From Mobula hypostoma (taxonomy: Eukaryota): 64,000 nt of DNA. The notes under the pieces are model-generated. The model saw only the letters and a list, made by a program, of their open reading frames with translations, did no database searches and had not been told where the DNA came from. A program made the translations under genes and the position numbers. This document shows positions 2,609-55,087 of the stretch, in pieces. How positions within the stretch are numbered: position 1 is the first letter of the stretch; every line of letters starts with the position of its first letter. Location: the NCBI RefSeq assembly GCF_963921235.1, contig NC_086119.1:4030001-4094000 (forward strand), given 5' to 3'.

Positions 2609-2719
2609 ATGGAGTCGGTGACCGAGTGGCTCCAGCAGCGCTTCCCCGCGGTGCGACACCTGGGCCCGGATGCGCTGGAGCAGCTGCTTCGGGAGGAGCG
2701 GGGGCGGCTGCTAGTGCTG
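2609..2719 (+). CDS. Rhodanese-domain gene A, coding exon 1; full CDS join(2609..2719,3424..3532,6322..6581), 159 aa
   Basis: ATG at 2609, 37 codons MESVTEWLQQRFPAVRHLGPDALEQLLREERGRLLVL, GTGAGC donor at 2720. Same length and phase as exon 1 of paralogs B and C. Confidence 0.9.
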
Positions 2720-3423
2720 GTGAGCGCGGACTGGCCGATCCCGAAGGGGCAGCGGTTCCGGGCAACTTCACCGCCCAACGCCGAGGCCGCAGCTACTGGA
2801 GAACGACCCGAAACGCGGCGTCCCTCCATCAGAACTCCACCGGGGAAATTTTGGTCCCTCCTCCTACCCCCGGGACTCCTCTCTTCGTCCTCCTGCTATC
2901 CTGGTATCTCTCTTTTCCCCACCCCGGGGTCTTTTCCTCGATTGGATCATAACTCAACCCCGTCATACAATCACTGTCGTCGGGAACGGGGGGAGCCCCG
3001 AAACAAACATTGAACCGGCCTCCGCTGAAAATTCTCAAAGTAAATCTTTATCATCAAGGTACTGTACATATAAGTCACCATTTACAACCCCGAAATTCTT
3101 TCTCGGAAGCATGTCCTCACGTATGAGCCCCTCTGACACTGGGAACGTTCGGCCCACTGGGTCTCTGCTAGCGCCCAACTCTTACAGTGACCCCGCCCAC
3201 TTCATTTCCCCCACCGGATGCACTGTGACCTATTTGCGCTTATATAAGTTTTCCCCACCCCACCCCACTCCACCCAACCCATCCTGCCCATCGCTGGGAT
3301 GTGGGGGGTGACGGAGACCCCGGAAGGAAGGGAACCCCCTCCGATCACAGGGAGAGCGGGCAAGTTCCCCCCCCCCACCCCAGGGAGAGAAGACAACGGA
3401 CCGGTGTCTCCCTCTCGTTACAG

Positions 3424-3532
3424 GACGTCCGCAGTCCGGCCGAATATGAAGTCAGTCACTTGGAGGGAGCCGTTCGCGTCGACCCAGAGACCACCGACAT
3501 GGAGAGGGTGGTGGAGGAGCTGGGTCTGGCAG
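3424..3532 (+). CDS. Rhodanese-domain gene A, coding exon 2
   Basis: CTCTCGTTACAG acceptor; encodes DVRSPAEYEVSHLEGAVRVD (rhodanese DVR..EY..H..GA motif); 109 nt; GT donor at 3533. Confidence 0.92.
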
Positions 3533-3536
3533 GTAA

Positions 3537-5240
3537 TCTTGCCCGACAAATCTGTTAGAATTATTTTGTGGAAATGATATACAGGATAGACACAGGAGAG
3601 TCAGTGGATGTTGCTTATGTGGATTTTCCGACGGTCTTTGACAAGAGCTGCTCATGAGGCCGCTTGGTATTACAGGAGGGATAAAAGCCTGGCTGACTGG
3701 CAGGAGGCAAAGAGTGGGGAAATGGGGGCTTTTCTGGTTGGCTCCTAGTGACTAGTGGTGTTCTGCTGGGGTTGGAGTTGGGACCATTTGGATGATAGAA
3801 TTGATGTCTTTGTGGCCAAGTTTGCTGACTATATGAAGATAGGTGGAGGGGCAGGTAGTGTTGAGGAAACAGGGTGTCTACAGACAGACTTAGACAGATT
3901 GGGAGAATGGGTGAGGAAGTGGCAGGTGGAATATAGTGTAGGGAAGTGTACGCTCAGGCACTTTGGGAGAAGGAATAGAGGGTAGACTGTTTTCTAAACA
4001 GGGAGAAAAGTCAAAAATCAGAGGTGCAAAGGGACTTGGGAGTTCTCATGCAGGATTCCCTGAAAGTTAGCCTGCAGGTTGAGTCGGTGGAAGGCAAATG
4101 CAATGTTAGCATTCATTTCGGGAGGACTAGAATGTAGAGGAAAGGCTATGATGTCGAGGCTTTATAAGGCTCTGGCCTGACTGCACTTGGAGTATTGTGA
4201 GCAGTTTTGGGCCCCTTATCTTAAAAAAAACTGATGTGCTGGCATTGGTGAGGGTCCAGCGGATATTCACGAGAATGATCTCAGAAATGGACGGGTTAAT
4301 GTATGAGTGTTTGATGGCTCTGGGCCTATACAGAAACTGCAACACATATGCTGACTGCTGTGCTACTGGTTGGTGGACATAGGATTTTCTCAGGGGAGAC
4401 CCTGTCGAAGGGTTAAGTAGATGTAAAAGACAACAAGGGGACACCCCAGAGTGTTTGCCAACGACCTGACCTAACACTTTGAGCCAGTTTACAGTCTGAA
4501 CCTAAACAGAAAAATATTGAAAGTTTTTCCAACAAGTTACTGTTCCAGATCTTTGTCGTCTGTGGACCAGTAAGCCACATGTTGAAGATGGTTTAGTTTT
4601 ATTGATGAATCAGTAAATTAAGCCAGTTCAAGATCATAACCTGACATCTATCTATGTCATGGTGTCGAAGAATGGTGGTGGTGGTGGGGGGGGGGGTGGT
4701 TCTCATTGGAACCCATTGAATATTGAAAGTCTCAGATAGTCTGGATGTGGAGAGGATGTTTCCTATAGTGGGGGAGTCTAGGACCAGAGGACACAGATAG
4801 AGTGGATGTGGAGAGGATGTTTCCTATAGTGGGAGAGTCTAGGACTAGAGGACGCAGGTAGAGTGGATGTGGAGAGGATGTTTCCTATAGTGGGGGAGTC
4901 TAGGACCAGAGGACACAGATAGAGTGGGTGTGGAGAGGATGTTTCCTATAGTGGTTTAGTCTAGGATCAGAGGGATGCCCATCTATAATGAAGATGAGAA
5001 GGAATTCCTTTCGCCAGAGTGTGGTGAATCTGGAATTTATTGCCGCAGATGGCTGTGGATGGCATCATGGGGTATATTTAAGGCTGAGGTTGATAGGTTT
5101 TTGATTAGTCAGGGCATCAAAGGTTATGGGGAGAAGGCAGGAGAATGGGATTGAGAGGGATAATAAGTCAGCTGTGGTGGAATGGTGGAGCAGATTCGAT
5201 GGGTTGAATGGCCTAATTCTGTTCCTCTGTCTTCTGGTGT
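3537..5240 (+). mobile_element. Degenerate CR1 LINE fragments in intron 2 of gene A (interrupted ~4330-4700), including a 61-bp tandem expansion at 4735-4975
   Basis: RT motifs (VAKFADYMKIGG, LDRLGEW), CR1 C-terminal region and 3' UTR. Homology starts about 4 nt after the exon 2 donor. Confidence 0.85.
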
Positions 5241-6321
5241 AAGGAAAACTGATCTCAGACCTCTGCTGCCTTGTGGCTGTACCCATTCATGGGGAAGGCG
5301 TTGGCAGTAAATCCCGGGGAAAAATCTGGAGCCAGTTCCTCAGGCAGTCCTATGTTGAGTTCAATGCTGACTGGTAACTCCTGTGACACCACTGGTACCA
5401 AACTGTATCGGTCTCCAAACTGTTGGATTCAGCCTGCTCATGGACAATGGCTTCGTACTGTCCTGGATTGTGTATTACGTAGACAGCTGGGTCACCACAT
5501 CCATGGTCGATTCTGAGCAATGGGGGCCTCTAATCAAAGAGTCTGAGGTGTGTGGAACTCGAATGAACAGGCTTCTGGTTGATGCTTCAAGAAACAAATG
5601 GTTAAATGGAAGCTGCTGTTTCAGAGTAACACACACACAAAATGCTGGAGCAGTTCAGAAGATCAGGCAGCAATAAACAATCGACATATCAGATTGAGAC
5701 CCCTCAACAGGACTGATCCTGGTGGTTTGGGACTTCAGGCTCCTATACCTCCTGCCCGATGTGAGGAGTGAGAAGATGGCCTGGCCCGGAGGGTGGGGAT
5801 CTTTGATGATGGACGCTGCAATCTTGAGGCAGCATCTCCTGCAGATATCCCGATGGTGAGAGGGACGTGTCCGTGATGGACTGGGCACAAGTCCACTACT
5901 TTCTCCAGCTTTTTACAGTCTTCTGCATTTGGGTTGCTGTGATGCAACCAGTCAGGATACAACATTCAAGATTGTTTCTCGTCATTCTTCAGAGCATGAG
6001 TGTAAAGGAGAGCAAAATGATCATTACTCCAGATCCAGTGCAGCTTAAAAAAGCACAAAGAACCCAATAAATAGAAATATATAACATTACCTTCTATACA
6101 TTGATTGTATGACATAGCATACTGCTACTGTCAGTGTAACACACACAAAATGCTGGAGGAACTTGGCAGGTCAGGCAATATATAAGGAAGAATAAACAGC
6201 TGAAGTTTCAGGCCGAGACCCTTCATCAGGACTTGGTGCCGGGAAGTGCTTGCAGGGTGATGTGTGACTGGAAGTGCACTGTGAGCTGCCTAACCCTCTC
6301 TATGCTCTGTCTCTCCCACAG

Positions 6322-6581
6322 GCAGCACTGTGGTCTGTTACTGCACAGTTGGATATCACGCCTCCCAAATGGCACAGAAGCTCTCTGAGGTTTGGGCCAG
6401 GGACTCCAGTCCGAGTGTCCCGGTGATGCCGAAAGTTTACAACCTGGACGGGGGCTTACGGAAGTGGAGCCAGGAGAACAGGCCCATGGTGGACGGCAGT
6501 AACCGCCTGACCAGCCAGGTTCATCCCTACAGCCAGCTGTGGGACCAGCTGCTGGAAGCTGATTTCAAACCTCCAGAGTAA
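6322..6581 (+). CDS. Rhodanese-domain gene A, coding exon 3 (active-site loop CTVGYH)
   Basis: Pyrimidine tract plus CCCACAG acceptor, phase-compatible. Encodes VVCYCTVGYHAS...YNLDGGLRKW...VHPYSQLW, TAA stop; AATAAA at 6744-6749. Confidence 0.92.
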
Positions 6582-6789
6582 TGCCCACTCCCCGGCACCA
6601 GACTCCTGCAGACACCTCTGGGCACAACGCCACTCCTCCTGACACAACACCCACCACCACCCCCTCTTGGCATTCGCCCAGCTGGAGGGGTTTAGCACCT
6701 TGTACACACCTCATCATGTGTAACTTGTTAGGGGGTTGAAGAAAATAAAGAAAATGGCTTGTTTAATATTGCTGTGTCCTGTATTTTGA

Positions 6790-7020
6790 ATTTAGAGATA
6801 CAGCTCAGTAACAGGACTTTCCTTCCCAAAGAGCCCACACTGCCCATGTGACCATCGAACTTGCTGACCGGTATGTCTTTGGACTGGGGGAGAGAATCAG
6901 AGCACCCAGAGGAAACCCACACAGTCACGGGGAGAACGTACAAACTCCAGCAGGAATTGAAGCCGGATCACAGGTACTGTAATGGTTACACATTCAGTGC
7001 TACACTGCTGTAGGCTACCA
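6790..7020 (-). mobile_element. tRNA-derived SINE (V-SINE/HE1-like core); related copies near 20750-21050, 26820-27000, 41548-41790, 41845-42120, 47840-48085, 50100-50720, 51450-51730, 56510-56830
   Basis: Shared core GTTCTCCCCGTGACTGTGTGGGTTTCCTCTGGGTGCTC...CCCAGTCCAAAGAC recurs many times on both strands. Confidence 0.7.
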
Positions 7021-12330: not shown

Positions 12331-12602
12331 TCAGATTGGAGCCCTGAACTCGGGCTCCACCAGCTCAGCCCAGACCTTGTTGTAGGGGTGGACCAGGTGG
12401 GTGGGCTGCTCCTTGCCATCCACTATGGGTTTCCTCTCATTGGCCCACTTCGCCAGGCCTCCCTCCAGGTTGTAGACCACTGGGCAATGGTGCCCCGGCT
12501 GCTCAGGACCTGACGCCAGAGCCTGCTGCACTTTCTGAGCCATCTCCGAGCCGTGGTAACCCGCCGTGCAATAGCACACTACCTCTTTGTCCTTCAGATC
12601 GC
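12331..12602 (-). CDS. Rhodanese-domain gene B, coding exon 3 (active-site loop CTAGYH)
   Basis: TTGCAG acceptor, phase-compatible. Encodes GDLKDKEVVCYCTAGYHGS...YNLEGGLAKWANE...VHPYNKVW, TGA stop. 272 nt, same length as exon 3 of C. Confidence 0.9.
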
Positions 12603-16420: not shown

Positions 16421-16529
16421 CTGCCAGACCCAGCTCCTTCACCACCTTCTCCATGTCGGTGGTCTCTGGGTCGATGCGAACGGCTCCCTCCAAGTGACTG
16501 ACTTCATACTCGGCCGGACTGCGGACGTC
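16421..16529 (-). CDS. Rhodanese-domain gene B, coding exon 2
   Basis: CTCTCGTTACAG acceptor, DVRSPAEYEVSHLEGAVRIDPETTDMEKVVKELGLA, GTAGGG donor; 109 nt. Confidence 0.92.
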
Positions 16530-19344: not shown

Positions 19345-19455
19345 CAACACTAGCAGCCGCTCCCGCTCCTCCCGAAGCAGCTTCTCCACAGCGTCCGAGC
19401 CCAGGTTCCGTACCGAAGGGAAGCGGTGCCGGATCCACTCGGTCACCGGCTCCAT
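19345..19455 (-). CDS. Rhodanese-domain gene B, coding exon 1; full CDS complement(join(12331..12602,16421..16529,19345..19455)), 163 aa
   Basis: ATG at 19455, MEPVTEWIRHRFPSVRNLGSDAVEKLLREERERLLVL, GTGAGC donor; 16 nt differences in 111 versus exon 1 of gene A. Confidence 0.9.
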
Positions 19456-25871: not shown

Positions 25872-26064
25872 TCACTTGCCAGACGCGTTGTTCTGCTGCT
25901 GTTGCTCTGCCAGGGCCTGCTGCAGCCTGACCCGCTTGCGGGAGTAGTGCTGCCAGTGGAGAAGCTGCTGCTCGTCGATGAACTTGGCACACTGCGCGTT
26001 CACCAGCTCCTTGCGGAAGTGCTCGTACTGCAGCAGCTCCAGCATGTGCAGGCACTGGGGGTAT
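25872..26064 (-). CDS. MED31: Mediator subunit 31, exon 4
   Basis: YPQCLHMLELLQYEHFRKELVNAQCAKFIDEQQLLHWQHYSRKRVRLQQALAEQQQQNNASGK*, nearly identical to the vertebrate MED31 C-terminus; CTGCAG acceptor. Confidence 0.98.
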
Positions 26065-27019
26065 CTGCAGGGCAAGAGACAGAGAGTGAGAGAACTAGTG
26101 GAGAAACACGAGGGCCAGTGACCCCACACCCCAGGTCGGCAAGGGTCGGTTGGAGACACGAGGGGCGCGGTTCAAAGTCCTGTGATCAATGAGCCCTGGT
26201 CGTAGACCGGTGAGTCTGGAGGTTAAGGCCAGAAGGTCGAAGCCCCTGGGTCGGCATGTCTGGAAGTTGGAGGCCCGATGTCTGCAAGTCTGGGCAAGGA
26301 ACTGGAGGCCAGACATCTGCGTGTCTGAGAGAGCATAACATATAGGAGCAGAAGTAGGCCATTCAGCCCATCGAGTCTCTGCCATTCAGTCATGGGCTGA
26401 TTCAATTCTTCCAGTCATCCCCATTCCCCTGCCTTCTCCCCATACCCTTCGATGCCCTGGCTAATCAAGATAAGGCCGGGGCCAAGAGTCCTGTGGTTGG
26501 AGGCCTGTCTGTGTGAGTGGTTTAGAGGGTGGGAAAGGGCGTTGTTTTGGTGTTGTTCTGCTGAACCTTGTGGACATGCTATATTGGCACCAGACTGTGT
26601 GGCAGCAATTGCAGACTGCCCCTAGCACATTCTCAGCGCAAACACCACATTTCACATTATGCTTCCATGTACACGTAACAAACAAATGAATCTGAAGAAT
26701 AATTCAGTGTCTCAAGAAGGCGGATTCATCACTAAAGACCCTCACCACCCAGGACATGCCGTCTTCTCATTACTATCATTGGAGAGGAGGTCCAGGAGCC
26801 TGAAGACACACACTCATGAACAGCACAGTGGTGTAGTGGTTACAGCGCCAGTGGCCCGGGTTCGATTCCTGACGCTGTCTGTACATTCTCCTCGTAACCG
26901 CATGGCTTTCCTCCCAGTTATTGTACAGTGACAGACCCTAACGGTTAGTAGGTTCATTGGTCACATGGAGGTAACTGGGCAGTGTGGGCTCGTTGAGCCA
27001 GAAAGGGCTATTACAATAA

Positions 27020-27830
27020 TACATAGGAACAGAATTAGCCCACTCAGCCCATCAAGTCTGCTCTGCTATTTCATTATGACTGATTTATCATCCCTCTTAG
27101 CCCCATTCTCCTGTCTCCTGACACCCTGACTAATCAACCTCTGCTTTAATATACCAATGACATGGCCTCCACAGCTGCCTGTGGCAATGAATTCCATAGA
27201 TTTAATACCCTCTGGCTAAAGAAATTCCTCATCTCTGTTCTAAACAGATGTCCCTCAATTCTGAATCTGTGTCCTCTGGTGCTAGACTCCCCACTATAGG
27301 AAACATCCTCTCCACATCCACTCTATCTGTGTCCTCTGGTCCTAGACTCCCCCACTATAGGAAACATCCTCTCCACATCCACTCTATCTGTGTCCTCTGG
27401 TCCTAGACTCCCCCACTATAGGAAACATCCTCTCCACATCCACTCTATCTGTGCCCTCTGGTCCTAGACTCCCCACTATAGGAAACATCCTCTCCATACC
27501 CACTCTGTGACCTCTGGTCCTAGACTCCCCCACTATAGGAAATGTCTTCTCCACATCCACTCTATCTGTGCCCTCTGGTCCTAGACTCACCCACTATAGG
27601 AAACATCCTCTCCACATCCACTCTATCTGTGCCCTCTGGTCCTAGACTCCCCCACTATAGGAAACATCCTCTCCACATCCATTCTATCTGTGTCCTCTGG
27701 TCCTAGACTCCCCCACTATAGGAAACATCCTCTCCACATCCATTCTATCTGTGTCCTCTGGTCCTAGACTCCCCCACTATAGGAAATGTCTTCTCCATAT
27801 CCAGTCTGTCTGGGCCTTTCACCATTTGAT
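27020..27830 (-). repeat. CR1 3' fragment containing a ~61-bp minisatellite (~9 copies, 27265-27800)
   Basis: Unit encodes DRVDVERMFPIVGESRTRGH on the minus strand and is flanked by CR1 3' sequence. Confidence 0.9.
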
Positions 27831-28179
27831 GCCATGCTGTATCTCTAGTTTCTTTTCCTCTGCCATCCAAATCCATGAACACTAACTTCTTATTTCTTTA
27901 TTTACAATATTTAGTCATTTGTAATTTATAGTAATTTTTATGTATTGTGTTGTACTGCTGCTGCAAAAGAACAATTTCACAACACATCTCAGTGATAAAA
28001 ACCTGATTCTAGATATGAACTTCCCAGGGCAATGTACAGTGAAGAAGGCGGTGCCTCAGGTTATCTATTTTTACGGTAATTTATATTACATCGCTCTGTA
28101 CTGCTGCTGCAAAACAATGCATTTTACGTTATACGCCAGTGATATGAAACCCAAATCCGACACTGGCCGGGGCACTTAC

Positions 28180-28276
28180 TTCAGGTACTTGGCGTACTCC
28201 GGTTCTTTCCAGTACAGAAGGTACTTGAAGTAATTGACGAACGTGCGGTCTCTGAAGTAGCCTCGCTGCGCCAGGA
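28180..28276 (-). CDS. MED31: Mediator subunit 31, exon 3
   Basis: (F)LAQRGYFRDRTFVNYFKYLLYWKEPEYAKYL(K); 97 nt; CAG/GTAAGT boundaries. Confidence 0.97.
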
Positions 28277-30252
28277 CTGCGGCACCAAGACAAAATAATT
28301 CAATTAGATGCCAGCGACAAGGCTACCCAGACCACCACACCAATAGACAAGGCACACCTCCATAACCAGTGCTGGCTCTCTAATCCCTCAGCCACAACCC
28401 CAACTCCCACCACTCTTTAACGCCATTCCCCTACCTGTCCCTCTGCATTGCCACCCCTCCAACAATCCCTTACAGGAGCTACTCCCAACCACCCAGCACG
28501 GTCCTTACCACCGTTCACACCCAGCAAGCACTCCTGTATCGCCCAGTGAGCCTCCGGGGCCCCTCTCTGAGACCCTGCCATTCACCGATCACACCGCGTC
28601 GTCAGTCAAACTCTCAAATGCCGAGGAGGAGCGTACTGGAGTGAGACGGATCAGCAGCAACCTTGCACTCAACATCAGCAAGAACAAGAAATAGACGGGA
28701 CTTCAGGAAGGGAACACACACTGGCCCTCATCGAGGGGCCAGGGGTGGAAAGGCTGAGTAGTTTAACCAATTTCCCCTGGGATCAATAAAGTATGACTAT
28801 GACTATGTCTGGTTTCAAGTAGCTGGGCATCAACATCTCAGAGGATCTATCAAGGGCCGAAGGTCTATCAGGGGCCGTTGGTGTAACCATGAAGAAGGCA
28901 CAACAGCGGCTCTGCTTCATTAGGAGCTTGAGGAGACTTGGTATGTTACCAAATACTCTGACAAATCTCCGTAAATGTCCGGTGGAAGGCATTCTGACTC
29001 GTTGCATCACAGTCTGATTTGGAGGCTCCAATGCACAGCATCGGAATGAGCTGCAGAGGATTGCAGACTGAATCAGCTCTATCGTGGGCACAACCCTCCC
29101 CAGCACCAAGGACATCTTCTAAAGGCGGTGCCTCAAGACAGCAGCCACCACTAGGAACCCTCAGCACCCAGGGCAAGCCCTCTCCTCATCAGTACCATCG
29201 AGGATGAAAGGCCCACATGCAATGCTTTGGGAACAGCTTCTTCCCCTCCACCATCAGATTTCTGAATGGACAACGAACCCATGTACACTACCTCACTTCT
29301 TTTTCTTTCTTTTGCTCTCTTTTTGCACAATTAATTTAATTTATATATATATATATATATATTTCATTGTAATTTTTAGTTTGTTATGTATTGGAATTTA
29401 CTGCAGTTGCAAAACAACATATTTCATGACATGCCAATCATATTAAACCTGATATCATCGTGGTGTGTGGACTGGGCTCTGTAGTTCACGTTATGATGTG
29501 TTTCTGGTCTCTCCCTTTTTAATTGCTAATTTGTACGATTTTCATTGGGACAGACTGGCTCTGTGGCCTGCAGTTAAACAACACAGTGCTCAGCTGAACT
29601 GAACATTCCTAGGCTGGTTCAAGGTTTTGATGTTTTATATTTTGTGTGTTTTTTGCTCACCTTTGCCATTTGCACAATTTTTTCTCTTTTTTTTGCACAA
29701 TGGGTGTTTGATGTTTTCTTTGAATGGGCTCTTTGTTTCACGGCTGACCGTGGAAAGTCGAATCTCATGGTTATATGCTACATATACTTTGATAATAAAT
29801 GTACTTTGACTTTGAATCTTTGATTCTGGCTTAATTGTGCAAACTTGGAGGCAGAATTTAGTCAGCTTCCATCATCAGGGACCCCCACCACCGAGGACTG
29901 GCCCTCTTCTCACTGCTACCATCAGGGAGGAGGTACAGGAGCCTGAAGGTACACAGTCAACGATTCAGGAACAGCTTCTTCCCCTCCGCCATCAGAGTTT
30001 TGAATGGTCTGTGAACCCATGAACACAAACTAGTTATTCAGCTTTCGTAATTTACGGTGTTTTTATATGTATTGCATTGTACTGCTGCCACCAATATCAC
30101 ATCCTATGTCAGTGCTAATAAACCAGATTCCGATATCCTACACCAGCTCCCCTGGTCTAAGCCTCCAGCTGAATCCCGTTGCACTGCCTTGCGCAGTCTG
30201 CCTGGCACTGTTCCCGAGGTCAGCAACGCCGGCAGCTACCCAGGATACTCAC

Positions 30253-30327
30253 AGTTCAGGTAGTTTGGGTTTGCCAGACACTGAACAAACTCCAGCTCCA
30301 CCTGGAAACGCAGCTTTGCCTGTTCCT
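30253..30327 (-). CDS. MED31: Mediator subunit 31, exon 2
   Basis: (E)EQAKLRFQVELEFVQCLANPNYLN; 75 nt; CAG/GTGAGT boundaries. Confidence 0.97.
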
Positions 30328-32519
30328 CTGATGATGGATAATGGGGCGGGGGGGGGGGAATGGTGGAAAACACAGGTTAATTCTCACTGTTCAAAAACTG
30401 ACAAAGTGTGATACTCAAACATCATCTCACAAAACATAGAACAGTACAGCAGTACAGAGTACAGGCCCTTTGGCCCATGACGTTTTTACTTACTCTAAGA
30501 TCAATCTAACCCCTCCCTCCCACACAGCCCTCCATTTTTCCATCATCCATATGCCCATCTAAGAGTCTCTTAGATGCCTTTAATGTATCTGCCTCCATGC
30601 CCCCAAACCTCCTCTCCACCTCCCAGTAAATCTTCCTGGGGATCTCCTGCACCTTGCCCCACAACCTCGGGGACCTGCTCCTGACATCCGCCACTGTCTG
30701 CGTTCTCTCCGTGACTGCGTGGGTACCTCCTGGGTGTTCCAGTTTCATCCCTCATTCCAAAGACGCGGGAGCTTCTGGGTTAATTGACCACTGCAATTTA
30801 CCCTCCAGCTGGGTTAATGGCAGAGTCTGTGTGAACTTGATGGGAATGTGGGGACAATTAAAGCAAATGCATGGCTAATGGTTGGCACTAACCCAGGGGT
30901 CAGTAAGACCAAAGAACTGATTGTGGACCTCAGAAAGAGTAAGAAGAAGGAACACACACTGGTTCTCATCGAGGGATCAGAAATGGAAAGAATGAGCAAT
31001 TTCAAGTTCCTAAGTGTCAACATCTCTGCACCCAACATATTAATGCAGCTTCAAAGAAGATACATCAGCAGCTATATTTCATTAGGAGTTTGAGAACATC
31101 TTCGGAAACAGCTCTGTTTCTATCTTTAATATCTCTTTTTTTCCTTTTCAGGGTTCTTTTGAAGACCCTGACCTGGAGTTACACGCTGACTTCAGTTCTT
31201 TGCAGAAATGGGACCCGCTCTCAGGGCCTCACGACCGGCAACTTTTCGATATGCCAAGGACGTGGCCTGGAAGACTAGCACACCTTCAGGGTGCCGGATT
31301 TTGGTGGCTCTGGAGATGGGCTGATTCGAGGCCGGTACTGCTGCCTGATGTGTCGCGGGAGTGTATGGAAGATCGAAAGCAGCGAGCTGGCTGCTGGCTG
31401 TGTGCCTAGAGACCCGAGTTCTTTGGGCACAAAGCTCCGGAAAATCGACGCAAGACTTTTAACTCCATAAATTGGCGAGTTGTTTTGTTATGCCGCCCCT
31501 CTCGCTGTGAAATGGGGACACCTATTTTTCCCTTATTAGGGAGAGAGAGAGAGCCTGTGGAATGTTGAATTACCGGGTGAACGAGTAGTGCAAGTCTGTG
31601 TCTTTATTGATGCTTCGCTGCACACTTGAGTGCTCGGTGGAGGGGGGGGTGCTTTTTTGCTGGTGGGGGAGGGAGGGGGTTGTTGCTTTGCTGCTGTTTA
31701 TGCTTGGGAGGGGGGAGTTGGGGGTCTTTGGGGTTCTAACATTTAACTGTCATTTATTCCTCTGCTTTCGTGGATGTTTGCGAAGTAAAAGAATTTCAGG
31801 ATGTATATTGTATTCATATATACAGTGTGTGTGTTTTTTTTATATATATATATATATACACACACACTTACTGTAATTCACAGTTTCTTTCTCTATTATT
31901 ATGTGTTGCATTTACTGCTGCCGCAAAGACGACAAATTTCACAACAAATGCTGGTGATGTTAAACCTGATTCTGATTCAGGTGGGGGCGGGGGATGCTAA
32001 ACCCTAATACACTTTATTATTTCTTAATTTATTTGTGGTTATATTAGTTAGTGTATTGTGTGTGAGCTATATGTACAGTGTTTAGCGTCTTGATCCGGAA
32101 ATGAATCTCAGGGTTATATATATGGTGACATTGATGCACTTTGGTAATAAATTTATTTTGAACTTTTTCTTTAGTGAACTGGAAAATTGCACATCATGAA
32201 AAGGCCGATAAGAATGGCGATAATTTCTTTGGAACAGAGGACTATAAGGAAACTTTGTCGAAATATATAAAATTATGAACGACCTGGATTCAGTGAGCTT
32301 ACAGGAAGAATTAATTTGACACCAGAGTGTGTGGCAACACCTGCAGGCTACTCTTAGCACCTGCCTGGGTATCTTGGTTGTTAACCCCAATGATTCATTT
32401 CACTGAACGTCTCCATGTCTGTGAGATACATAAGCATAAATCTTGAATATATCCCTTTACAGATCTATCACATTCAGATATATCCCTTTACAGATTTAAT
32501 TCTCACAAGTACATTGAAA

Positions 32520-32860
32520 TATTGAGTGGCAGGGTGGAGATACGTCTCTACCAAAGGAGGTGTAAGGCATTCCTTCCCTCCACTAGTCTACAGGTCACCC
32601 TTGGGCAAGGTGTAGAACCTGCTTAGCCCCCCACTGATCAGGGTCACGTGAAGCCACGGGATCAGGTGGTGGATGGTTGTTTGAGCAGCTGGTGTACATC
32701 ACAAGTCCTGGTTACTTGACCACTGACAGCAGACAATCTCTGAAGAGTATTGATAATAGCTGGGGTCACCCAGCTTGTAAAGATACTGGCCAGAAGAAGG
32801 CAATGGCAAACCACTTCTGAAGAAAAATTTACCAGGAACAATCATGGTCATGGAAATGGC
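32520..32860 (+). mobile_element. Probable RTE-related SINE or RTE fragment
   Basis: Contains GAAGAAGGCAATGGCAAACCACTT, a segment characteristic of RTE/BovB-related repeats; classification tentative. Confidence 0.4.
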
Positions 32861-33539
32861 ACATAACGTACAAAACTATAGTGGGGAGGGGGGTGACCAA
32901 AACAAAGATTGAAACATTGAAGCATACAGAGGAATGTGTCATTTGTGGTAACAACCAACACATTTAAGGATGTGCTGTCCTAGGGCCAACACAGACCAAT
33001 GATCGAACAACATGAGAGATGAGGAAATGAAGGGACTGGTATTTTTTGTAGGAAGAGTTACAGAATAAACACTCACTGCAAGGCAATTAATCCTCCTGCC
33101 TTCCAGCTCCAAAATCCGGGTTCATCCCTGACTTCCAGTGCTGACTGTGTACACTTTGCATGTTCTCCTCTGACTGGGTAGGTTTTCCCCACGTGCTCTG
33201 GTTCCCCCCCGCCCGCCCCGATCACATTCCAGCTCGCAGGTTGCTGTGCTAATGTCTGTGCAATCCGGTAGACATACGGAAACATCTTGGCCAAGACAGT
33301 GAGACTGAAAACAGCTTCTTCCCGAGGGCTGTTGTGCAGCTGAAAGATGCTACACCACGGCTTGCCGATGGCCTTTGAGTGTTATGGACTACTGCAGTCA
33401 CTTGCTGCATGTAAATATGGAAATTTTGTTTTTAATTAAGCTGTAACACATGTATTGCAGATATTTGTTTTGCTGAGACTGGAATAGCACAGCAATCTCA
33501 TTGTCCTGAGCAATGACTTATTCTAATTGCCCAATTTAG

Positions 33540-35460
33540 ACCATAAGACATAGGAGCAGAATTAGGCCATTTGGCCCATCGAGACTGCTCCCCCATTTAA
33601 TCATGGCTGATCCTTTTATTCCCTCCTCAGCCCCACTCCCTGGCCTTCTCCCCATAACCTATGATACCGTGTCCAATCAAGAACCTATCAAGCTCTGCTT
33701 TAAATACACCCAACGACCTGGCTTCCAAAGCTGCCTGTGGTAACAAATTCCACAAATTCACCACTTTCTGGCTAAAGAAATTTATTTGCATTGCTGTTTT
33801 AAATGGATGTCCCCCTATCCTGATGTTGTCCTCTCCTGTCCTTGACTCCCCCAACATGCAAAACATGCTTTCCACATCTACCTTATCTAGGCCTTTCAAT
33901 ATTTGAAAGGTTTCAATGAGATCCCCTTCGTTCTTCTAAATTCCCGCAAGTACAGACCCAGAGCCATCAAACATTTTTCATATGATTAACATTTCATTCC
34001 CAGAATCATCCTTATGAACCTCCTCCAAACCCTCTCCAATGACAGCACATCTTTTCTTGGATGAGGAGCCCAAAACTGTTGACAATATAACACTTTAAAT
34101 GCTGCATTTGCTACCCTTTTTGATTCTGCATCCCTAGTGCACTGATACTCACCCTGCTGGCTGCAGTTTTCTCCTCTCATCTGCCTGTCCTTCCTGACAG
34201 TCTGTCTGCACACTATCTTGGCTTTTTTTACCATCCATTCTACCCTCAGTCCCTTTACTCCGGTTCCCACTCCCCTGACAAATTAGTTTAAACCCTCCCC
34301 AACAGCTCTAACAAACCTGCCCACCAGAATATTGGTCCCCCTCGGGTTCAGGTGCCGCCCGTCACTTTTGAACAGGTCACACCTCCCCCAGAAGAGATCC
34401 CAATGATCCAAGAACCTAAAGCCCTGCCCCCTGCACCAGCTTCTCAGTCATGCATTAATTTGCCAAATCATCCTGTTTCTACCCTCACTGACACGTGGGA
34501 CAGGCAGCAGTCAAACGTTCCTCATTTGATAACACTTTCGTTCCTGGAATCATCCTTGTGAACCTCCTTTGAACCCGAAGCCCAAAACTGTTCACAATAC
34601 TGAAGGTGAGGCCTCACCAGTGCCTTATAAAGCAGACCTCTTGAAATGAATGCTAACATTGCATTTGCCTTCCTCACCACCAACTCTACCTGCAAATTAA
34701 CCTTCAGGGTGTTCTGCACAAGGACTCCCAAGTGCTTCTGCATCTCAGATTTTTGGATTTTCTCCCCAATTAGAAAATAGTCTGCACATTTATTTCTACT
34801 ACCAAAGTGCATGACCATGCATTTTCCAACATTATATTTCATTTGCCACTTTCTTGCCCATTCTCCGAATGTGTGCAAGTCCTTCAGCAGCCTACCTGTT
34901 TCCTCAACACTATCTGTCCCTCCACCAATCTTCGTATCATCTGCAAGCTTGGCAACAAAGCCATCTATTCCATCATCTAAATCATTGATATACAGCATAA
35001 AAAGAAGTGGTCTCAACACTGACCCCTGCAGAACACCACTAGTCACTGGCAGCCAACCAGAAAAGTATCCTGTTATTCCCAGTTGCTGCCTCCTACCAAT
35101 CAGCCAATGCTCTAACCATACCAATAACTTTCCTATGATACCATGGACTCTTAACTTGGTAAGCAGCCTCATGTACGGCACCTTGTCAAAGGCCTTCTGC
35201 AAGTCCAAATATACAACATCCACTACATCCCCTTTATCTATCCTACTTGTAATTTCCTCAAAGAATTCCAACAGGTCCATCAGGCAAGATTTACCCTTAA
35301 GAAACCATGCTGACTTTTTCCTATCTTGTCCTGTGTCACCAAGTACTCCATAACCTCATCCCTAACAATTGACTTCAACATCTTCCCAGCCACTGAGGTC
35401 AGGCTAACTGGTCTATAATTTCCTTTCTGCTGCTTCCCTCCTTCCTTAAAGAGTGGAATG
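33540..35460 (-). mobile_element. CR1 LINE fragments (RT region 34522-35460, 3' end 33540-34090, rearranged piece between)
   Basis: YLDLQKAFDKVP, SGVLQGSVL, ADDTKIGG and FFSQKVVNLWN motifs on the minus strand. Confidence 0.9.
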
Positions 35461-35479
35461 GCATTTGCATTAGTGCTGC

Positions 35480-36270
35480 TTCATGCACCCATGCTGCGTT
35501 TGCTAATTTCATCAATTTTGCCTCCAGCTTCCACCCTGCCCTTAAATTCACTTGGTCCATTTCTGTCACCTCCCTCCCCTTTTTTGATCTCTGTCTTCAC
35601 CTCCATCAACAAACTGTTGGCTGCCATATTTTATAAACCTACTGATTCGCAGTTATCGTGACTCTTCCGACACTGTCCACCGTAAAAATGCAATTCCCCT
35701 TTCTCAGCTCCTTCATCACCGCTGCACGTGTCCGCAGGATGCTTTCCTTTTCAGTACATCAGAGATGCCCTCTTTCTTCAAAGAACGGGATTTCCCTTCC
35801 CCCCTCACCAGCATCTCCCCCGTTTCCTGCTGCCTTAATATAGAATTCTTTTGTCCTCACCTACCACCCCATGCTTCCACATTCAACAAATCATTCTCCA
35901 CAGCTTCTGCCATCTTCAACAGGATCCTACCACCATACACATCTTTAACCCCCCACTTCCCACAGGGGTCGCTCCCTCCATGATTCCTTGTCCATTTGTC
36001 CTTCCCACATATACCCCTGCTCCTTACCTGCCCACCACATCGCCCCCGGCTTCTCCTCTCCTCTCCAGCCCTTGACCTTTCCCAGCCACCTGGTTTCACC
36101 TATCACCTTCCAGCTATCCTCCTTCCCCTACCCTCACCTTTTTACTATGTCGTCTTCCCCCCCCTCCTTTCCAGTCCTGAAGAAGGGACTCAAGCTAAAA
36201 CTTCGACTGTTTGTTCATTTCCATCGATGCTGCCTGACTTGCTGAGTTCCTCTTGCGTTTCGTGTGTTGA
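35480..36270 (+). mobile_element. Penelope-like retroelement fragment
   Basis: Degenerate RT-end motifs (FYKPTDS, IPFSQL) followed by the same terminal repeat seen at 1390 and 45530. Confidence 0.6.
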
Positions 36271-36719
36271 ACTGAGAGAGAAAGTGGGTTGCAGGCAAAT
36301 AGGAGGGAGATAGATTTAAACAGGCTTCCTCCTTTACCTGATAAAAGAATGAGTTACTTACACAGCACGTGGATCTGTATCAGCAAGACTAAAGAGCAAA
36401 TGCGGAAAGGAGGGATTGGGCCAAGAGGCTGTTTCATCAACGGGCCAGAGAGTTGAATTAATTGTAAAATTAATTTAATAAGTAAGCAATGGCGAATGCC
36501 AGGTCAAAAGAAGATTCTATATTTTGAGGTCAAAAGATTGTTAGACAATTCGCCAGTGGTGGAACCAGATACCCCAAGCCGGCGCTGCTTGGATAGTACA
36601 GAAAGCTCAAGGGCCGAACTGTCTCTCCTCACCCTATGGAAAGCGCCCGAATGGCTAGGGTCAGTCCCCCAAACCACAGCAGCACTGGCTGGGGAGAGAG
36701 AACAACAGCGATCTCCAAC

Positions 36720-37090
36720 AACTGGACCCCGACTTCCGCCCCGTGCATTTGCTCGCAGCTCCCACTTCCGCCCCTCTTAGCCGCCCGGCGATTGGCGCAG
36801 CCGGTCACGTAACGAACACATCACCATTACCAGTCTCCAAAGTATTCGGGGCCGCCGCCATTCTCCCTTCGTTACGCCACGGACATAAACCAGAAGAAGC
36901 CGTTTCGCGTCCCCAGCACTAATAGTCGGTGATCACAGGTACGATTTTCCGCACGTTAATCGATGTAATCGACACAGCAGACGAGGAATCAGCCCCCCGC
37001 CTCAACCCGTTCACCGTCTCCGCAAGCAACCGAAGGAAGTGACGAAGACAAGCAGACACTGCCCCCCACCGGAATGGAGGGGAAACGGCA
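36720..37090. promoter_or_regulatory. CpG-rich bidirectional promoter shared by MED31 (-) and rhodanese gene C (+)
   Basis: High CpG density; ETS-type ACTTCCG (~36732, ~36764) and GGAAGT (~37035); GC boxes; ATTGG at 36791; YY1-type AATGGCGGC over the MED31 ATG; divergent genes on each side. Confidence 0.75.
36831..36861 (-). CDS. MED31: Mediator subunit 31, exon 1; full CDS complement(join(25872..26064,28180..28276,30253..30327,36831..36861)), 131 aa
   Basis: ATGGCGGCGGCCCCGAATACTTTGGAGACTG|GTAATG encodes MAAAPNTLET; phase 1 matches exon 2; total CDS 396 nt. Confidence 0.92.
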
Positions 37091-37534
37091 CGATATCGCC
37101 TCAGGGCTAGAGGACCGCCGGTATGGCCTCCTGACTGCCGGAAGACCGGTGCTGCCGCTCCCTGTCTTCAGGAGGACCGGTGCTGCCGCTCCCTGTCTTC
37201 AGGAGGGCTGGTGGTGCCGCGCTCTGTCTGCTGGAGGACCGGCGGTGCTACCCCCCCGGTCAGTGGGAGGACCGGTGGTGCTGCCCCCTGTCTGTGGGAG
37301 GACCGGTGGTGCTGCCCCCTGTCCGTGGGAGGACTGGTGTGCTGTCCCCGTCTGCCTGAATGGAAGACCAGTGGTGTTGTGTTCACTGGCCCGACTCTGG
37401 CCCCTCCTGGTTCACCTCTGTGAGCTGTTCCTTCTGGATAACCGCTTTTCCTGACGTCCTCTTTCCTGTGTGCTGACAGGTGGTTTTGGAAGATCCCGGA
37501 TCACTGTGAACCCCAGATCATCCCACCAGCAAGG

Positions 37535-37645
37535 ATGAACCCTGTAATCTGGTGGATTCGTACCAGCTTTCAGTCAGTGCAGGACCTCGAGTCCAACCAC
37601 CTACTGGAACGGCTGAAACAGAGCCGGAACCAGGTGTTGCTGCTG
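37535..37645 (+). CDS. Rhodanese-domain gene C, first coding exon; full CDS join(37535..37645,39395..39503,41148..41419), 163 aa
   Basis: MNPVIWWIRTSFQSVQDLESNHLLERLKQSRNQVLLL, 37 codons as in A and B, GTGAGA donor. An upstream acceptor at 37478-37479 suggests a 5' noncoding exon. Confidence 0.88.
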
Positions 37646-38580: not shown

Positions 38581-38599
38581 AGTGATGCTCTCTTTATAC

Positions 38600-39394: not shown

Positions 39395-39503
39395 GACGTC
39401 CGCAGTCCGGCTGAATATGAAGTCAGTCACTTGGAGGGAGCCGTTCGCGTTGACTCAGAGACCACCGACATGGAGAAGACAGTGAAGGAGCTGGGTCTGG
39501 CAG
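39395..39503 (+). CDS. Rhodanese-domain gene C, coding exon 2
   Basis: CTCGTTACAG acceptor, DVRSPAEYEVSHLEGAVRVDSETTDMEKTVKELGLA, GTAGGG donor; 109 nt. Confidence 0.92.
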
Positions 39504-51220: not shown

Positions 51221-52374
51221 CTGCACAGAGATAAAAACTCATTAAAAATCTGTACTGCACCCCCCCCACCCCCTCCCAAAGAGTGACCAACCAGTGGTCC
51301 CCCACACCAGAACGTCCCAGAGAAGCAGGATGTCATCTGGATGCAGCAAGCAGAGTTGTCTGGGTCACTGACAGAGGACAGCTGGAAGCTTCTGGGTAAT
51401 TTATCCCAGGCTGTTCCAGTGTGACTAGAGCTAGCGATTAGTTTCATTTGTTACGTACAGTGAAATACATCATTTGTGTCAACAGTTAACGCAGTCCAAG
51501 GATGTGCTGGGGGCAGCCCGCAAGTGTCTGGCACCAACATAGCATGCCCACGACTCACTAACCCTAACCCATAGGTCTTTGGACTGCAGGAGGAAACTGG
51601 AGCACCCGGAGGAAACCCATGTGATCACGGGGAGAATCGACAGACTCCTTTCAGACATTGGCAGGAATCAAACCCCGATCTTACCAGCAGCGCTGTAAAG
51701 CATTACAATAACCGCCATGTTGCTGTGCCACGTACCATAAGGTCTCTCCCTTTCACCTTAAGCCTGTTTTTGACATTTCCACTGTGGGGAAGAGAAGACT
51801 GATTATCCACCCGATCTGTGCCACTCTATCAAGTCACCTCTCAGTCTCCAATACTCCAGAGAAAACAACCCAACTTTGTCCAATATCTCCGTACAGCTCG
51901 TGCTCTCTAATCCAGGCAGCATCATGGTGAATCTCCTCTGTACCCCGTCCAAAGCCTCCTCACCTTTCCAGCAATGAGGCGATCAGATCTGCACACAGTA
52001 CCAACGGACCTGGGTTAGGTTGGATGCGGACATGTTGGGAGGGGTCTACGTTTCCACCCCAGTGAGGGGCAGGAAGCTGAAGCTGAGGAAGGCATGTGAC
52101 TGCAGAGAAGGCAGGGGAGAGTTTGGCCATTCATGCCATCGTTTCTGTGCTACAGGTCCCTCTGTTCCACAATGACCGTAGTCCAGAAGCTGATCAGCGC
52201 CCTGTACAGGCCCCGGTGCTCATCAGCACACTATACGGGTACGGGCCCCGGTGATGATCAGTGCACTTTACAGGTATGGGTCCCGGTGCCTATGTTCAGA
52301 TGTGAGGGTAAATCTCCCTGCCACCTGTCTCAGGGAACCTCAAGACCACCACTGCTTCCTTTCCAAGCACTTAC

Positions 52375-52512
52375 CATGTCCGAGACCCTGAGGTGGCCGT
52401 ACGAGAAGACGATGGCGTTGGGCGGGGTCGCCACAGGCAGCATGAAAGCAAAGGAGGTGCTGAGGGTGGCTGGAATCATGACGTAGAGGGGGTTCATTCT
52501 GATCTGGGAGGC
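52375..52512 (-). CDS. SLC13A5: SLC13A5 penultimate exon
   Basis: ASQIRMNPLYVMIPATLSTSFAFMLPVATPPNAIVFSYGHLRVSDM contains the SLC13 signature FMLPVATPPNAIVF; 138 nt; CAG/GTAAGT boundaries. Confidence 0.92.
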
Positions 52513-52666
52513 CTGGGTGGGGCAAGAGGGAGAGTTGTAGGGTTAAGCACGTAGAGGGGGTTCATTCTGATCCGGGTGGGGCAAGAGGGAGAGTTGTAAG
52601 GTTAAGCACGTAGAGGGGGTTCATTCTGATCCGGGTGGGGCAAGAGGGAGAGTTGTAGGGTTAAGC
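52481..52666. repeat. 68+59+59-bp tandem triplication spanning the SLC13A5 splice acceptor
   Basis: ACGTAGAGGGGGTTCATTCTGATC recurs at 52481, 52549 and 52608. Confidence 0.92.
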
Positions 52667-52892
52667 ATGTCTCAGGCTCAGAGTCCATAGAGAATCAGGA
52701 TCAGGTTGATTATTAGCAGGACACTGCATTGTGTTAAAAAAAATCACGACAAGTTACAAGAAATGTAGATATAAATACATAGTTCAAACAGAGAGCGGTG
52801 GTGAGGTAGTGTTCTTGGGTTCTTTGTCTATTCAGAAATCTGATGGCACAGGGGAAGAAGCTGTTTATAAAAGAGTGTGTATCTTCCTTCGT

Positions 52893-54085
52893 TATTTTCA
52901 AAAGGCTTTTGACAAGGTCCCACATAGGAGATTAGTGTGCAAACTTAAAGCACACGGTATTGGGGGTAAGGTATTGGTGTGGGTGGAGAATTGGTTAGCA
53001 GACAGGAAGCAAAGAGTGGGAATAAACGGGACCTTTTCAGAATGGCAGGCGGTGACTAGTGGGGTACCGCAAGGCTCAGTGCTGGGACCCCAGTTGTTTA
53101 CAATATATATTAATGACTTGGATGAGGGAATTAAATGCAGCATCTCCAAGTTTGCGGATGACACGAAGCTGGGTGGCAGTGTTAGCAGTGAGGAGGATGC
53201 TAAGAGGATGCAGGGTGACTTGGATAGGTTGGGTGAGTGGGCAAACTCATGGCAGATGCAATTTAATGTGGATAAATGTGAAGTTATCCACTTTGGTGGC
53301 AAAAATAGGAAAACAGATTATTATCTGAATGGTGGCCGATTAGGAAAAGGGGAGGTGCAACGAGACCTGGGTGTCATTATACACCAGTCATTGAAAGTGG
53401 GCATGCAGGTACAGCAGGCGGTGAAAAAGGCGAACGGTATGCTGGCATTTATAGCGAGAGGATTCGAGTACAGGAGCAGGGAGGTACTACTGCAGTTGTA
53501 CAAGGCCTTGGTGAGACCACACCTGGAGTATTGTGTGCAGTTTTGGTCCCCTAATCTGAGGAAAGACATCTTTGCCATAGAGGGAGTACAAAGAAGGTTC
53601 ACCAGATTGATTCCTGGGATGGCAGGTCTTTCATATGAAGAAAGACTGGATGAACTGGGCTTGTACTCGTTGGAATTTAGAAGATTGAGGGGGGATCTGA
53701 TTGAAACGTATAAGATCCTAAAGGGATTGGACAGGCTAGATGCAGGAAGATTGTTCCCGATGTTGGGGAGGTCTAGAACGAGGGGTCACAGTTTGAGGAT
53801 AGAGGGGAAGCCTTTTAGGACCGAGGTTAGGAAAAACTTCTTCACACAGAGAGTGGTGAATCTGTGGAATTCTCTGCCACAGCAAACTGTTGAGGCCAGT
53901 TCATTAGCTATGTTTAAAAGGAAGTTAGATATGGCCCTTGTGGCTACAGGGGTCAGGGGGTATGGAGGGAAGGCTGGGTTCTGAGTTGGATGATCAGCCA
54001 TGATCATAATAAATGGCGGTGCAGGCTCGAAGGGCCGAATGGCCTACTCCTGCACCTATTTTCTATGTTTCTATGTTTCTATGTT
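52893..54085 (+). mobile_element. Young 5'-truncated CR1 LINE with an open RT/C-terminal frame, antisense in an SLC13A5 intron
   Basis: Uninterrupted frame FQKAFDKVPH...GVPQGSVLGP...FADDTKLGG...FFTQRVVNLWNSLP; (TTCTATGT)n tail; nearly identical to 10200-12223. Confidence 0.95.
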
Positions 54086-54711
54086 ATAGAGGGCATGTCC
54101 TGGGTGATGGGGAGCCTTAATGATGGATGCCTCCTTTCCGAGGCATCACCTTTTGAAGATGTCCTCAGTGCTGGGGAGGCACAAGCCCATGATGGAGCTG
54201 GCTGAGTTTACAACCCTCTGCAGCTTTTTCCGATCCTGTGCAGTGGCCCCTCCACACGAGATGGTGATGTAACCAGTTAGAATGCTCTCCGCAGTAAATC
54301 TGAGGAAATCTGCTTGTGACTTTGGTGACAGACCAAATCTCCTCAAACTCCTTGTGAACTCCAGCTGCTGCCACGCCTTCTTCAGAATTGCATCAGGATG
54401 TTGGGCCCAGGATGTGGACAGGGTAAGTACCAGACCCAGTTCCATTGCAGGAGCACAGCAGGTTGAACAGCATCCATAGAGGGATGCAGGTAGGGATTCC
54501 CACTACCAACCCACTGTGCATTGCGTGGCTGTTGTGGGAGTGATGGAGACCGAGGGAGGAGGTGGGTAGGTTACTGAGCAACGACAAGGCCTGGAAGTGA
54601 CATAGGACAGGTGGCTCCAATCCCCGCTGTTCATGAGTGTTTGACAAGGAATCCCAGATCCCCCTCCTCCCAAGATGTTGGCGGACCCTCGGAGCGGGTG
54701 TTGGGACGCAC

Positions 54712-54873
54712 CATGGAAGCCAGGATGGGGAGGAAGAGAGTGGCAGTGGCCACGTTACTGGTGCACTCGGTGAAGGTGGCGATCAGCAGGCAGAGAACAG
54801 TGACGATGGCCCATGGTGGAATATTCTGCAGGGGCAGCAGCTGGCTTCCCAGCCACCTGGACAGTCCCGACTC
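54712..54873 (-). CDS. SLC13A5: SLC13A5 exon (TECTSN motif)
   Basis: ESGLSRWLGSQLLPLQNIPPWAIVTVLCLLIATFTECTSNVATATLFLPILASM; 162 nt; CAG/GTGCGT boundaries. Confidence 0.92.
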
Positions 54874-55087
54874 CTGCGAGGGAAAAATGGGAGTTTTATC
54901 TGCTGACAGCATTTACACTCGGGATATTACATACCAAAACTTTTCAGAACTTGACCCACTCCTCCCAATCTCACCTGTCTTCTCCTGACCTCTGCCCTGT
55001 CCCACATCTGCTTGACCTGCTCAAGGGTAGGTCACATCTGATCCATACGGGTACATTTGACCTGGTCCAGTGAGGAGATGTTAAGGC

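Follow-up and report, generated by a model that had tools for sequence, protein, structure and literature searches.

The 64,000-nucleotide stretch of the genome of the ray Mobula hypostoma analysed here (RefSeq assembly GCF_963921235.1, contig NC_086119.1, positions 4,030,001 to 4,094,000; hereafter the window) contains three paralogous genes, A, B and C, whose predicted products are single-domain rhodaneses of about 160 amino acids (aa), each encoded by three intact exons. The catalytic loop of C ends in arginine, and those of A and B end in histidine. Comparison with relatives indicates that the rhodanese with a loop-end histidine is real and ancient; its functional effect, judged from mutagenesis of yeast RDL2, would most likely be a weaker use of thiosulfate or an altered sulfur donor or acceptor. 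Taken as a whole, we consider it fairly probable that A and B represent an old and functional lineage that lost the arginine and changed its donor or acceptor.

The loop-end arginine is held to be a catalytic essential of CxxGxR rhodaneses, and here a natural lineage has histidine in its place, under purifying selection, in all cartilaginous fishes sampled. With the ancestral arginine copy a few kilobases away as a built-in control, the three paralogues on one fold amount to a clean natural experiment on the role of the loop-end residue. The locus also puts on record an animal rhodanese family that extends from corals to lizards, lies beside MED31 and SLC13 and is inconsistently named in annotations, and its exon-limited concerted evolution offers an example of selection setting bounds to gene conversion.

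Histidine at the end of the catalytic loop

The three loops lie in the third exons of their genes.

6342..6359, forward strand: loop CTVGYH of A (tgc aca gtt gga tat cac; Cys codon 6342-6344, His codon CAC 6357-6359)
12553..12570, reverse strand: loop CTAGYH of B (loop-end His codon CAC)
41180..41197, forward strand: loop CTLGYR of C (tgc aca ttg ggc tac cgt; Arg codon CGT 41195-41197)

An initial annotation of the window, made from its letters alone, had placed the loops here and held that only C keeps the CxxGxR motif, and direct reading of the sequence bears it out. The loop-end codons of A, B and C are CAC, CAC and CGT, respectively, and a CGY codon becomes a histidine codon through one G-to-A change. 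We compared 15 A- or B-type proteins from 12 elasmobranch species and 9 C-type proteins with an outgroup of 137 family representatives (from bacteria, corals, molluscs, tetrapods and the coelacanth), which were picked by their Y-C-x-x-G core and not by position 90; alignment positions follow the numbering of C. The types differ at the following positions.

Position 90: Arg in 137/137 outgroup and 9/9 C-type proteins; His in 15/15 A/B-type proteins
Position 91: Ser in 132/137 outgroup and 9/9 C-type proteins; Gly or Ala in 15/15 A/B-type proteins
Position 93: variable in the outgroup; Lys or Arg in C-type proteins; Glu or Gln in A/B-type proteins (Glu in 11/15)

The catalytic Cys85 is invariant in A, B, C and all 137 outgroup representatives. 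Conservation in the outgroup reaches at least 85% at 28 columns, and of these just 90 and 91 distinguish both paralogues, A and B, from both C and the outgroup; the residues kept in A and B include D38, R40, E44, S48, H49, Y84, C85, G88, N118, G121, W126, H145 and P146. Paralogue A and an A-like gene of the elephant shark also deviate at positions 127/128, within a conserved W-A-N-E.

The C-type loop (C-T-[VL]-G-Y-R-S-S-K) occurs in rays, a skate and sharks, and a coelacanth protein carries the same loop. B-type loops (C-T-[AV]-G-Y-H-G-S-E) were found in Carcharodon, Cetorhinus, Rhincodon, Heterodontus, Mustelus, Scyliorhinus, Chiloscyllium, two skates, Pristis and Hemitrygon, and A-type loops (C-T-[VT]-G-[YF]-H-A-S-Q), besides that in the window, in Hemitrygon and Pristis only. 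No A-type gene was found in the sharks and skates searched, and the 10 kb that follow B downstream contain none in the whale shark or the white shark; loss or non-sampling may account for this. The elephant shark has one gene with His (g3, CTVGYHGSQ), and its A-like gene has Gln (g2, CTTGYQAAH). When orthologues are aligned, as the initial annotation had proposed, the histidine thus proves to be held in sharks, rays, skates and a chimaera gene. The pattern exceeds what chance would give. The 15 His sequences stem from one or two events, and it is their retention, not their number, that is the evidence; over a total tree length of about 3.5 substitutions per site, the non-Arg clade has a single change (His/Gln) at position 90.

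Two further features noted at the outset are likewise confirmed. The CYC motif is present in A, B and C and in all the homologues examined from chondrichthyans, tetrapods, corals and molluscs, although in just 44 of the 137 outgroup representatives overall; as Cys83 lies two residues before Cys85 on the same strand, its side chain should face the same side. The 13 residues before YNL, described as hypervariable, read as the initial annotation gave them, differ in both sequence and length among species and form an insertion relative to the bacterial homologues.

Conservation of A and B was also gauged by the ratio of nonsynonymous to synonymous substitution rates (dN/dS), another check that the initial annotation had suggested. 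It was calculated pairwise by the Nei–Gojobori method (NG86) for exon 3 of the B and C orthologues, and many of the pairwise dS values exceed 1 and are saturated.

B, Mobula–Rhincodon: dN/dS 0.14
B, Mobula–Chiloscyllium: dN/dS 0.13
B, Rhincodon–Chiloscyllium: dN/dS 0.14 (dS 0.87, the least saturated)
B, Rhincodon–skate: dN/dS 0.18
B, Mobula–skate: dN/dS 0.32
C, three pairs: dN/dS 0.19–0.46

At 0.13–0.32, the B orthologues are not near 1, which argues that they are not decaying copies. Comparison of Mobula with Hemitrygon akajei gives protein identities over exon 3 of 95% (A), 93% (B) and 80% (C). The identity of A to the A of Pristis pectinata is 71%, and that of B is 82% to Pristis B and 66–73% to shark B-type proteins. 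In the exon-3 tree, A has a long stem (about 0.2–0.3 substitutions per site) and, beyond it, a crown whose branches are very short, a pattern that indicates an early burst and then constraint, and a dN/dS near 1 for A appears implausible.

These data bear on the idea that A, B or both are duplicates in decay or pseudoenzymes without catalytic activity, which is largely refuted and which we regard as very improbable. A residue that is invariant elsewhere has indeed been lost, A combines its long stem branch with the extra changes at 127/128, and the A-type gene was not found in sharks and skates in the searches made. Yet the reading frames of A, B and C are all open and their introns all have canonical GT-AG splice sites, A and B keep the catalytic Cys and 26 of the 28 family-conserved columns, dN/dS of B is low, the Mobula–Hemitrygon identities of A and B exceed that of C, and the lineage has been kept since before the chimaera–elasmobranch split (see below).

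A spliced Logan contig (run SRR13269362) carries a skate B-type exon 3, so that at least one species apparently transcribes and splices the His type. In a skate contig from this run (L004, 1097-1573; P0026), a C-type exon 1–2 is joined to a B-type exon 3, and the contig runs into Med31 on the other strand. The join probably arose as a chimera during assembly and not by alternative splicing, given that exon 2 is near-identical between paralogues. The annotated B protein of Rhinoraja (P0027) has a B-type exon 1.

Origin of the lineage and exchange among the paralogues

In the elephant shark (locus L006), an Arg gene (CTVGYRSSK) lies head-to-head with Med31 in a compact cluster that has SLC13 on its flank and the convergent pair g2 and g3 downstream of Med31. 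The lizard locus has a single Arg gene, again head-to-head with Med31 and followed by SLC13. This shared synteny makes C, by position, the orthologue of the ancestral gene, with Arg as the ancestral state. The initial proposal that C is the ancestral enzyme agrees with this arrangement and with the invariance of the arginine in bacteria, invertebrates, tetrapods and the coelacanth. The SLC13-family gene is a conserved neighbour of the ancestral rhodanese gene in the ray, elephant shark, white shark and lizard (L007 26038-28895; L006 1-19); the placing of a sulfate-family transporter beside a sulfurtransferase may be coincidence or functional linkage.

An exon-3 tree rooted on bacteria contains one non-Arg clade (support 95/82), in which batoid A groups with elephant-shark g2 (96/89) and elasmobranch B with elephant-shark g3 (94/77). 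Because A of the ray goes with g2 and B with g3, both derived lineages predate the chimaera–elasmobranch split, which dates back on the order of 400 million years. The tree thus indicates that the split between A and B is not recent and that the non-Arg lineage is old and specific to chondrichthyans.

When the loop and the next three columns are masked, leaving 75 columns, the non-Arg clade is not recovered, and an approximately unbiased (AU) test on the masked data does not reject it (p = 0.47–0.57). As the masked tree is without an A+B clade, the case for a single origin draws partly on synteny and exon 1. The exon-1 type is M-E-P-V-[TS]-E-W in A and B versus M-N-P-V-I-W-W in C, and, together with the position of the convergent pair, it provides independent support for one origin. 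In the masked tree, batoid and skate C are drawn towards B, probably because the 3′ half of exon 3 (B–C, 81% nucleotide identity) has been partly converted or evolves slowly.

Could A and B instead have gained their histidines independently, or could the histidine have passed between them by gene conversion? The masked tree would fit such a history, conversion is demonstrably active in the cluster, and CGY to CAY is a single transition. We nevertheless judge it improbable, because the unmasked non-Arg clade is well supported and the AU test does not reject it with the loop masked, because A and B have a common exon-1 type and occupy the same convergent-pair place in elephant shark and ray, and because dS between A and B in exon 3 is about 1.7 and no conversion tract spans the loop; just the 3′ half of exon 3 aligns between the two, at 70%.

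The activity of conversion is seen in exon 2. Within species (Mobula, Chiloscyllium and skate contigs), exon 2 is 92.7–96.3% identical in nucleotide sequence between paralogues, and between species it is 73–88% identical, orthologues included. Thus exon 2 of A is 96.3% identical to that of B and 92.7% to that of C, and exon 2 of Chiloscyllium B is 88.1% identical to that of Rhincodon B versus 96.3% to that of Chiloscyllium C. The dS between paralogues is 0.04–0.17 in exon 2 versus 0.8–1.7 in exon 3. In the window, the exon-2 similarity of A and of B to C breaks off in the upstream intron after about 13 bp. The similarity between A and B also covers exon 1 with about 75 nucleotides of intron 1 (87% nucleotide identity), and about 150 bp upstream of exon 2. 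The two derived elephant-shark genes encode identical exon-1 peptides, and exons 1–2 of two Pristis proteins are identical. These patterns show that gene conversion is active across the cluster, with exon 3 type-specific since before the chimaera split. Selection for distinct active sites would be expected to keep exon 3 apart in this way, and physical distance could contribute to its escape, the introns before exon 3 measuring 1.6–3.8 kb.

The order of the pair is swapped between the two lineages. In the elephant shark (L006 10001-14389), the A-like gene adjoins Med31 on the same strand and the B-like gene is convergent with it; in Mobula (window 2609-19455) the arrangement is reversed. Recombination between the inverted, homogenized exons 1–2, flipping both exon 3s, could explain the swap.

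Predicted structure, proposed mechanism and relatives

An AlphaFold2 model of the B orthologue of Hemitrygon (P0017; mean predicted local distance difference test (pLDDT) score 92.1) has a strand at 80-84, the loop at 85-88 and a helix at 89-104, with Cys85 directly after the strand. This helix closes the catalytic loop, and the model places His90 in its first turn and Glu93 on the same face after one more turn. A surface loop of lower confidence (mean pLDDT 70 for the 10-residue block 101-110) contains the hypervariable segment. Foldseek matches this model to rhodanese structures at template modelling (TM) scores of 0.54–0.62 and identities of 17–23%, and the best matches to it in PDB and Swiss-Prot all have a rhodanese or Cdc25 fold. 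No close solved structure was found, the best PDB sequence match being 6MXV (E = 9e-5).

The catalytic weight of the loop-end arginine is known from mutants of other rhodaneses. In yeast RDL2 (CAKGVR), R111I causes a loss of about 90% of thiosulfate:cyanide activity, raises the Km for thiosulfate from 32 to about 100 mM and leaves no Cys persulfide formed from thiosulfate; R99I in DUF442 (CRTGTR) behaves in the same way (PMC8533005). The loops of 13 solved rhodaneses end in Arg (8), Thr (3) or Ser (2) and never in His (PMC8533005). C, with its arginine, falls within this range, and A and B, with histidine, fall outside it.

The comparisons show that a single ancestral Arg gene, head-to-head with MED31, is today's C, and that two added copies formed a convergent pair across MED31 before the chimaera–elasmobranch split. 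In this pair, the loop-end Arg-Ser changed to His-Gly/Ala (Gln-Ala in the A-like elephant-shark gene) and has since been under purifying selection, and conversion has homogenized exon 2 (and exon 1 between A and B) within each species while the difference in the active-site exon persisted. We propose that A and B most likely still carry a persulfide on Cys85 but load it poorly from thiosulfate at neutral pH, a prediction that follows from the need for Arg in CxxGxR rhodaneses and from the Cys and fold being kept. They probably use another donor or acceptor, such as a low-molecular-weight or protein persulfide, possibly in a pH-dependent manner through the imidazole. A would have drifted further (changes at 127/128, long stem, tight crown) and may have a third specificity. 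The Gln in the chimaera A-like gene suggests that the lineage tolerates or needs the loss of the guanidinium group, and not the gain of an imidazole as such.

Several points weigh against this account. The non-Arg clade disappears from the exon-3 tree when the loop is masked, and the dS values behind the dN/dS estimates are in many cases saturated. RDL2 is a distant relative, the closest such match being RDL1 (3d1p), at E = 1e-3. Glu93, at i+3, could raise the pKa of the histidine, so that a protonated His might partly replace the Arg.

The last of these points leads to an alternative in which the change from Arg to His was near-neutral, His with Glu93 giving the same charge, and the copies were kept through differing expression, that is, by regulatory subfunctionalization. 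A and B retain every other conserved residue, Cys85, Arg40, His49 and the HPY motif among them, each of the three genes has a 5′ region of its own and C alone has a promoter in common with MED31, and Glu stands three residues after the His in 11 of the 15 His-type proteins. A neutral swap should recur, however, yet Arg is present in 146/146 other family sequences, from bacteria to tetrapods. Moreover, the change is coupled to that of Ser91 to Gly/Ala, the A-like elephant-shark gene has an uncharged Gln, conversion homogenizes exon 2 but never exon 3, as two distinct selected active sites predict, and the R111I and R99I mutants show the position to be catalytically critical in CxxGxR rhodaneses (PMC8533005). 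We therefore think near-neutrality unlikely, and continue to favour an old lineage with a changed donor or acceptor. In a bolder form of this account, A and B would be an unrecognized class of rhodanese with an imidazole loop end, a pH-tunable or persulfide-specific sulfur/selenium relay kept beside the ancestral Arg enzyme throughout cartilaginous-fish history, with selection barring conversion from the active-site exon; this we put forward tentatively, as possible but doubtful.

Exon 3 of A, B and C alone scores 23.1, 22.8 and 23.4 bits against the Pfam family PF00581 (Rhodanese), and exon 2 alone scores 22.8 bits (gathering cut-off, 22.2); nearly all full-length homologues carry a precomputed PF00581 match. 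From 1.84 billion representatives, a profile search returned 244 proteins at E <= 1e-30, and the single-domain matches among the best 150 of these almost all have C-S-[VLI]-G-Y-R-S. The loop of the family reads C-[ST]-x-G-Y-R-S. Named members are found in the corals Montipora and Acropora, an octocoral, an abalone, a caecilian, lizards, the coelacanth and the elephant shark. The top scorers of the profile search (P0029, P0030, P0032 and P0049) are proteins of 1197–2327 aa with 8–16 tandem rhodanese domains and CYTGHTAS loops; they are a different, non-animal-looking family that matches through summed repeats only.

Bacterial proteins are 42–51% identical in exon 3, and horizontal transfer from bacteria was considered. 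We rejected it, as the CYC motif and the insertion are present in the coral, octocoral, abalone, caecilian, lizard and coelacanth members; this broad distribution in animals argues for a family that is old in animals rather than a recent bacterial transfer.

The family appears to be without a characterized member, and a literature search found no paper on the rhodaneses of cartilaginous fishes. Across P0001-P0027, members of the cluster are named Alvin_2599-like, GlpE-like, TrhO-like, YqhL-like or uncharacterized. The Swiss-Prot structural neighbours (Alvin_2599, TrhO, GlpE, YqhL and Arabidopsis STR14) are just 18–28% identical, and the discordant names of orthologues arise because all are loose best matches, at 22–28% identity.

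The closest known systems resemble the ray proteins to different degrees. Yeast RDL2 and RDL1 (CAKGVR and CASGKR; PDB 3D1P is RDL1) have a single rhodanese domain with a C-x-x-G-x-R loop like that of C and the ancestral family, and the conserved DVR motif of RDL1 aligns with the ray proteins. They are nevertheless distant (phmmer E = 1e-3; 18% identity by Foldseek); the loops of A and B end in His, and the ray proteins have an extra N-terminal helix, the variable insertion and a C-terminal HPY[SN]xxW extension.

The best curated family is the bacterial NCBIfam NF045521 ('rhoda_near_glyco', function unknown), which is matched over nearly the whole domain by C (100.8 bits), B-type (90.1) and A-type (81.5) proteins and is also the best match of the bacterial homologues P0010 and P0043; all of these, including the bacterial relatives tested, fall short of its cut-off of 145 bits, and membership is not established.

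Alvin_2599 (Rhd_2599) of Allochromatium vinosum likewise consists of a single domain of rhodanese fold (TM score 0.57 by query and 0.85 by hit), and the literature assigns it to a persulfide relay in the cytoplasm with TusA/DsrE2. At 26% identity over 121 residues it ranks 11th among the Swiss-Prot models, and with 107 aa it is without the N- and C-terminal extensions of the ray proteins (about 160 aa); it is not a close orthologue. GlpE and TrhO (YceA) of Escherichia coli have the same fold, with the catalytic Cys starting the loop, but the loop motifs differ, and the NCBIfam score for GlpE is 28.8 bits against a cut-off of 102, and that for TrhO (NF001133) is 38.1 bits against 170, the rhodanese part alone aligning without the N-terminal domain of TrhO.

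Gene models and layout of the locus

The genes lie along the window in the order A (forward), B (reverse), MED31 (reverse), C (forward) and SLC13 (reverse).

2609..2719, forward strand: coding exon 1 of A (37 codons, MESVTEW..., GT donor at 2720)
3424..3532, forward strand: exon 2 of A (DVRSPAEYEVSHLEGA..., ends in phase 1)
6322..6581, forward strand: exon 3 of A (active-site loop, hypervariable segment, C-terminal HPYS motif and stop; product 159 aa)
12331..12602, reverse strand: exon 3 of B (active-site loop and stop; product 163 aa)
16421..16529, reverse strand: exon 2 of B
19345..19455, reverse strand: coding exon 1 of B (MEPVTEWIRHRFP...)
25875..36861, reverse strand: MED31, head-to-head with C (coding exons 36861-about 36832 (MAAAPNTLET), 30331-30254, 28274-28179 and 26066-25875)
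36500..37400: CpG island common to MED31 and C (GC content 0.55–0.63; CpG observed/expected (o/e) 0.74–1.07, and 1.29 in the core, 36700-37000)
37535..37645, forward strand: first coding exon of C (MNPVIWWIR...)
39395..39503, forward strand: exon 2 of C
41148..41419, forward strand: exon 3 of C (active-site loop and stop; product 163 aa)
51104..54876, reverse strand: 3′ exons of an SLC13-type sodium/sulfate-carboxylate symporter gene, convergent with C

When the whole window was searched by tblastn with the exon peptides, each of the three exons turned up in three copies and none further. The spliced translation of C is 100% identical to a Mobula hypostoma protein (P0001) that NCBI names 'sulfurtransferase Alvin_2599-like'; the models of A and B come from reading of the splice sites and comparison with orthologues. 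An untranslated 5′ exon of C probably ends at a GT near 36940, and the start codon of MED31 lies less than 100 bp from this putative exon.

The initial suggestion that C is driven by a housekeeping promoter stands in part. C and MED31 do have a CpG island in common (o/e about 1.0–1.3), but the 5′ ends of A and B are CpG-rich too (GC content 0.64–0.67, o/e 0.65–0.93). The trait specific to C is the bidirectional promoter in common with MED31, not CpG richness.

The rest of the window contains several repeats. A 44-bp minisatellite of about 91 copies (21505-25474; 87% matches, GC content about 0.60, CpG o/e about 0.9) lies in the interval that separates B, at its 5′ end, from the 3′ end of MED31, and open reading frames (ORFs) with a similar peptide pattern at 11-405 suggest a related repeat at the left edge. 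Intron 1 of C contains a tandem array with a unit of about 58 bp (38440-39340), and intron 2 contains one with a unit of about 28 bp (39890-41070), which occupies most of the intron up to the acceptor region of exon 3 and gives rise to long spurious minus-strand ORFs. Reverse-transcriptase-like ORFs, fragments of long interspersed nuclear elements, lie at 10414-11622 and 11835-12140 on the forward strand and at 34522-35280 and 13234-13500 on the reverse strand; their sites are the region between genes A and B, the second intron of B and the sequence upstream of C.

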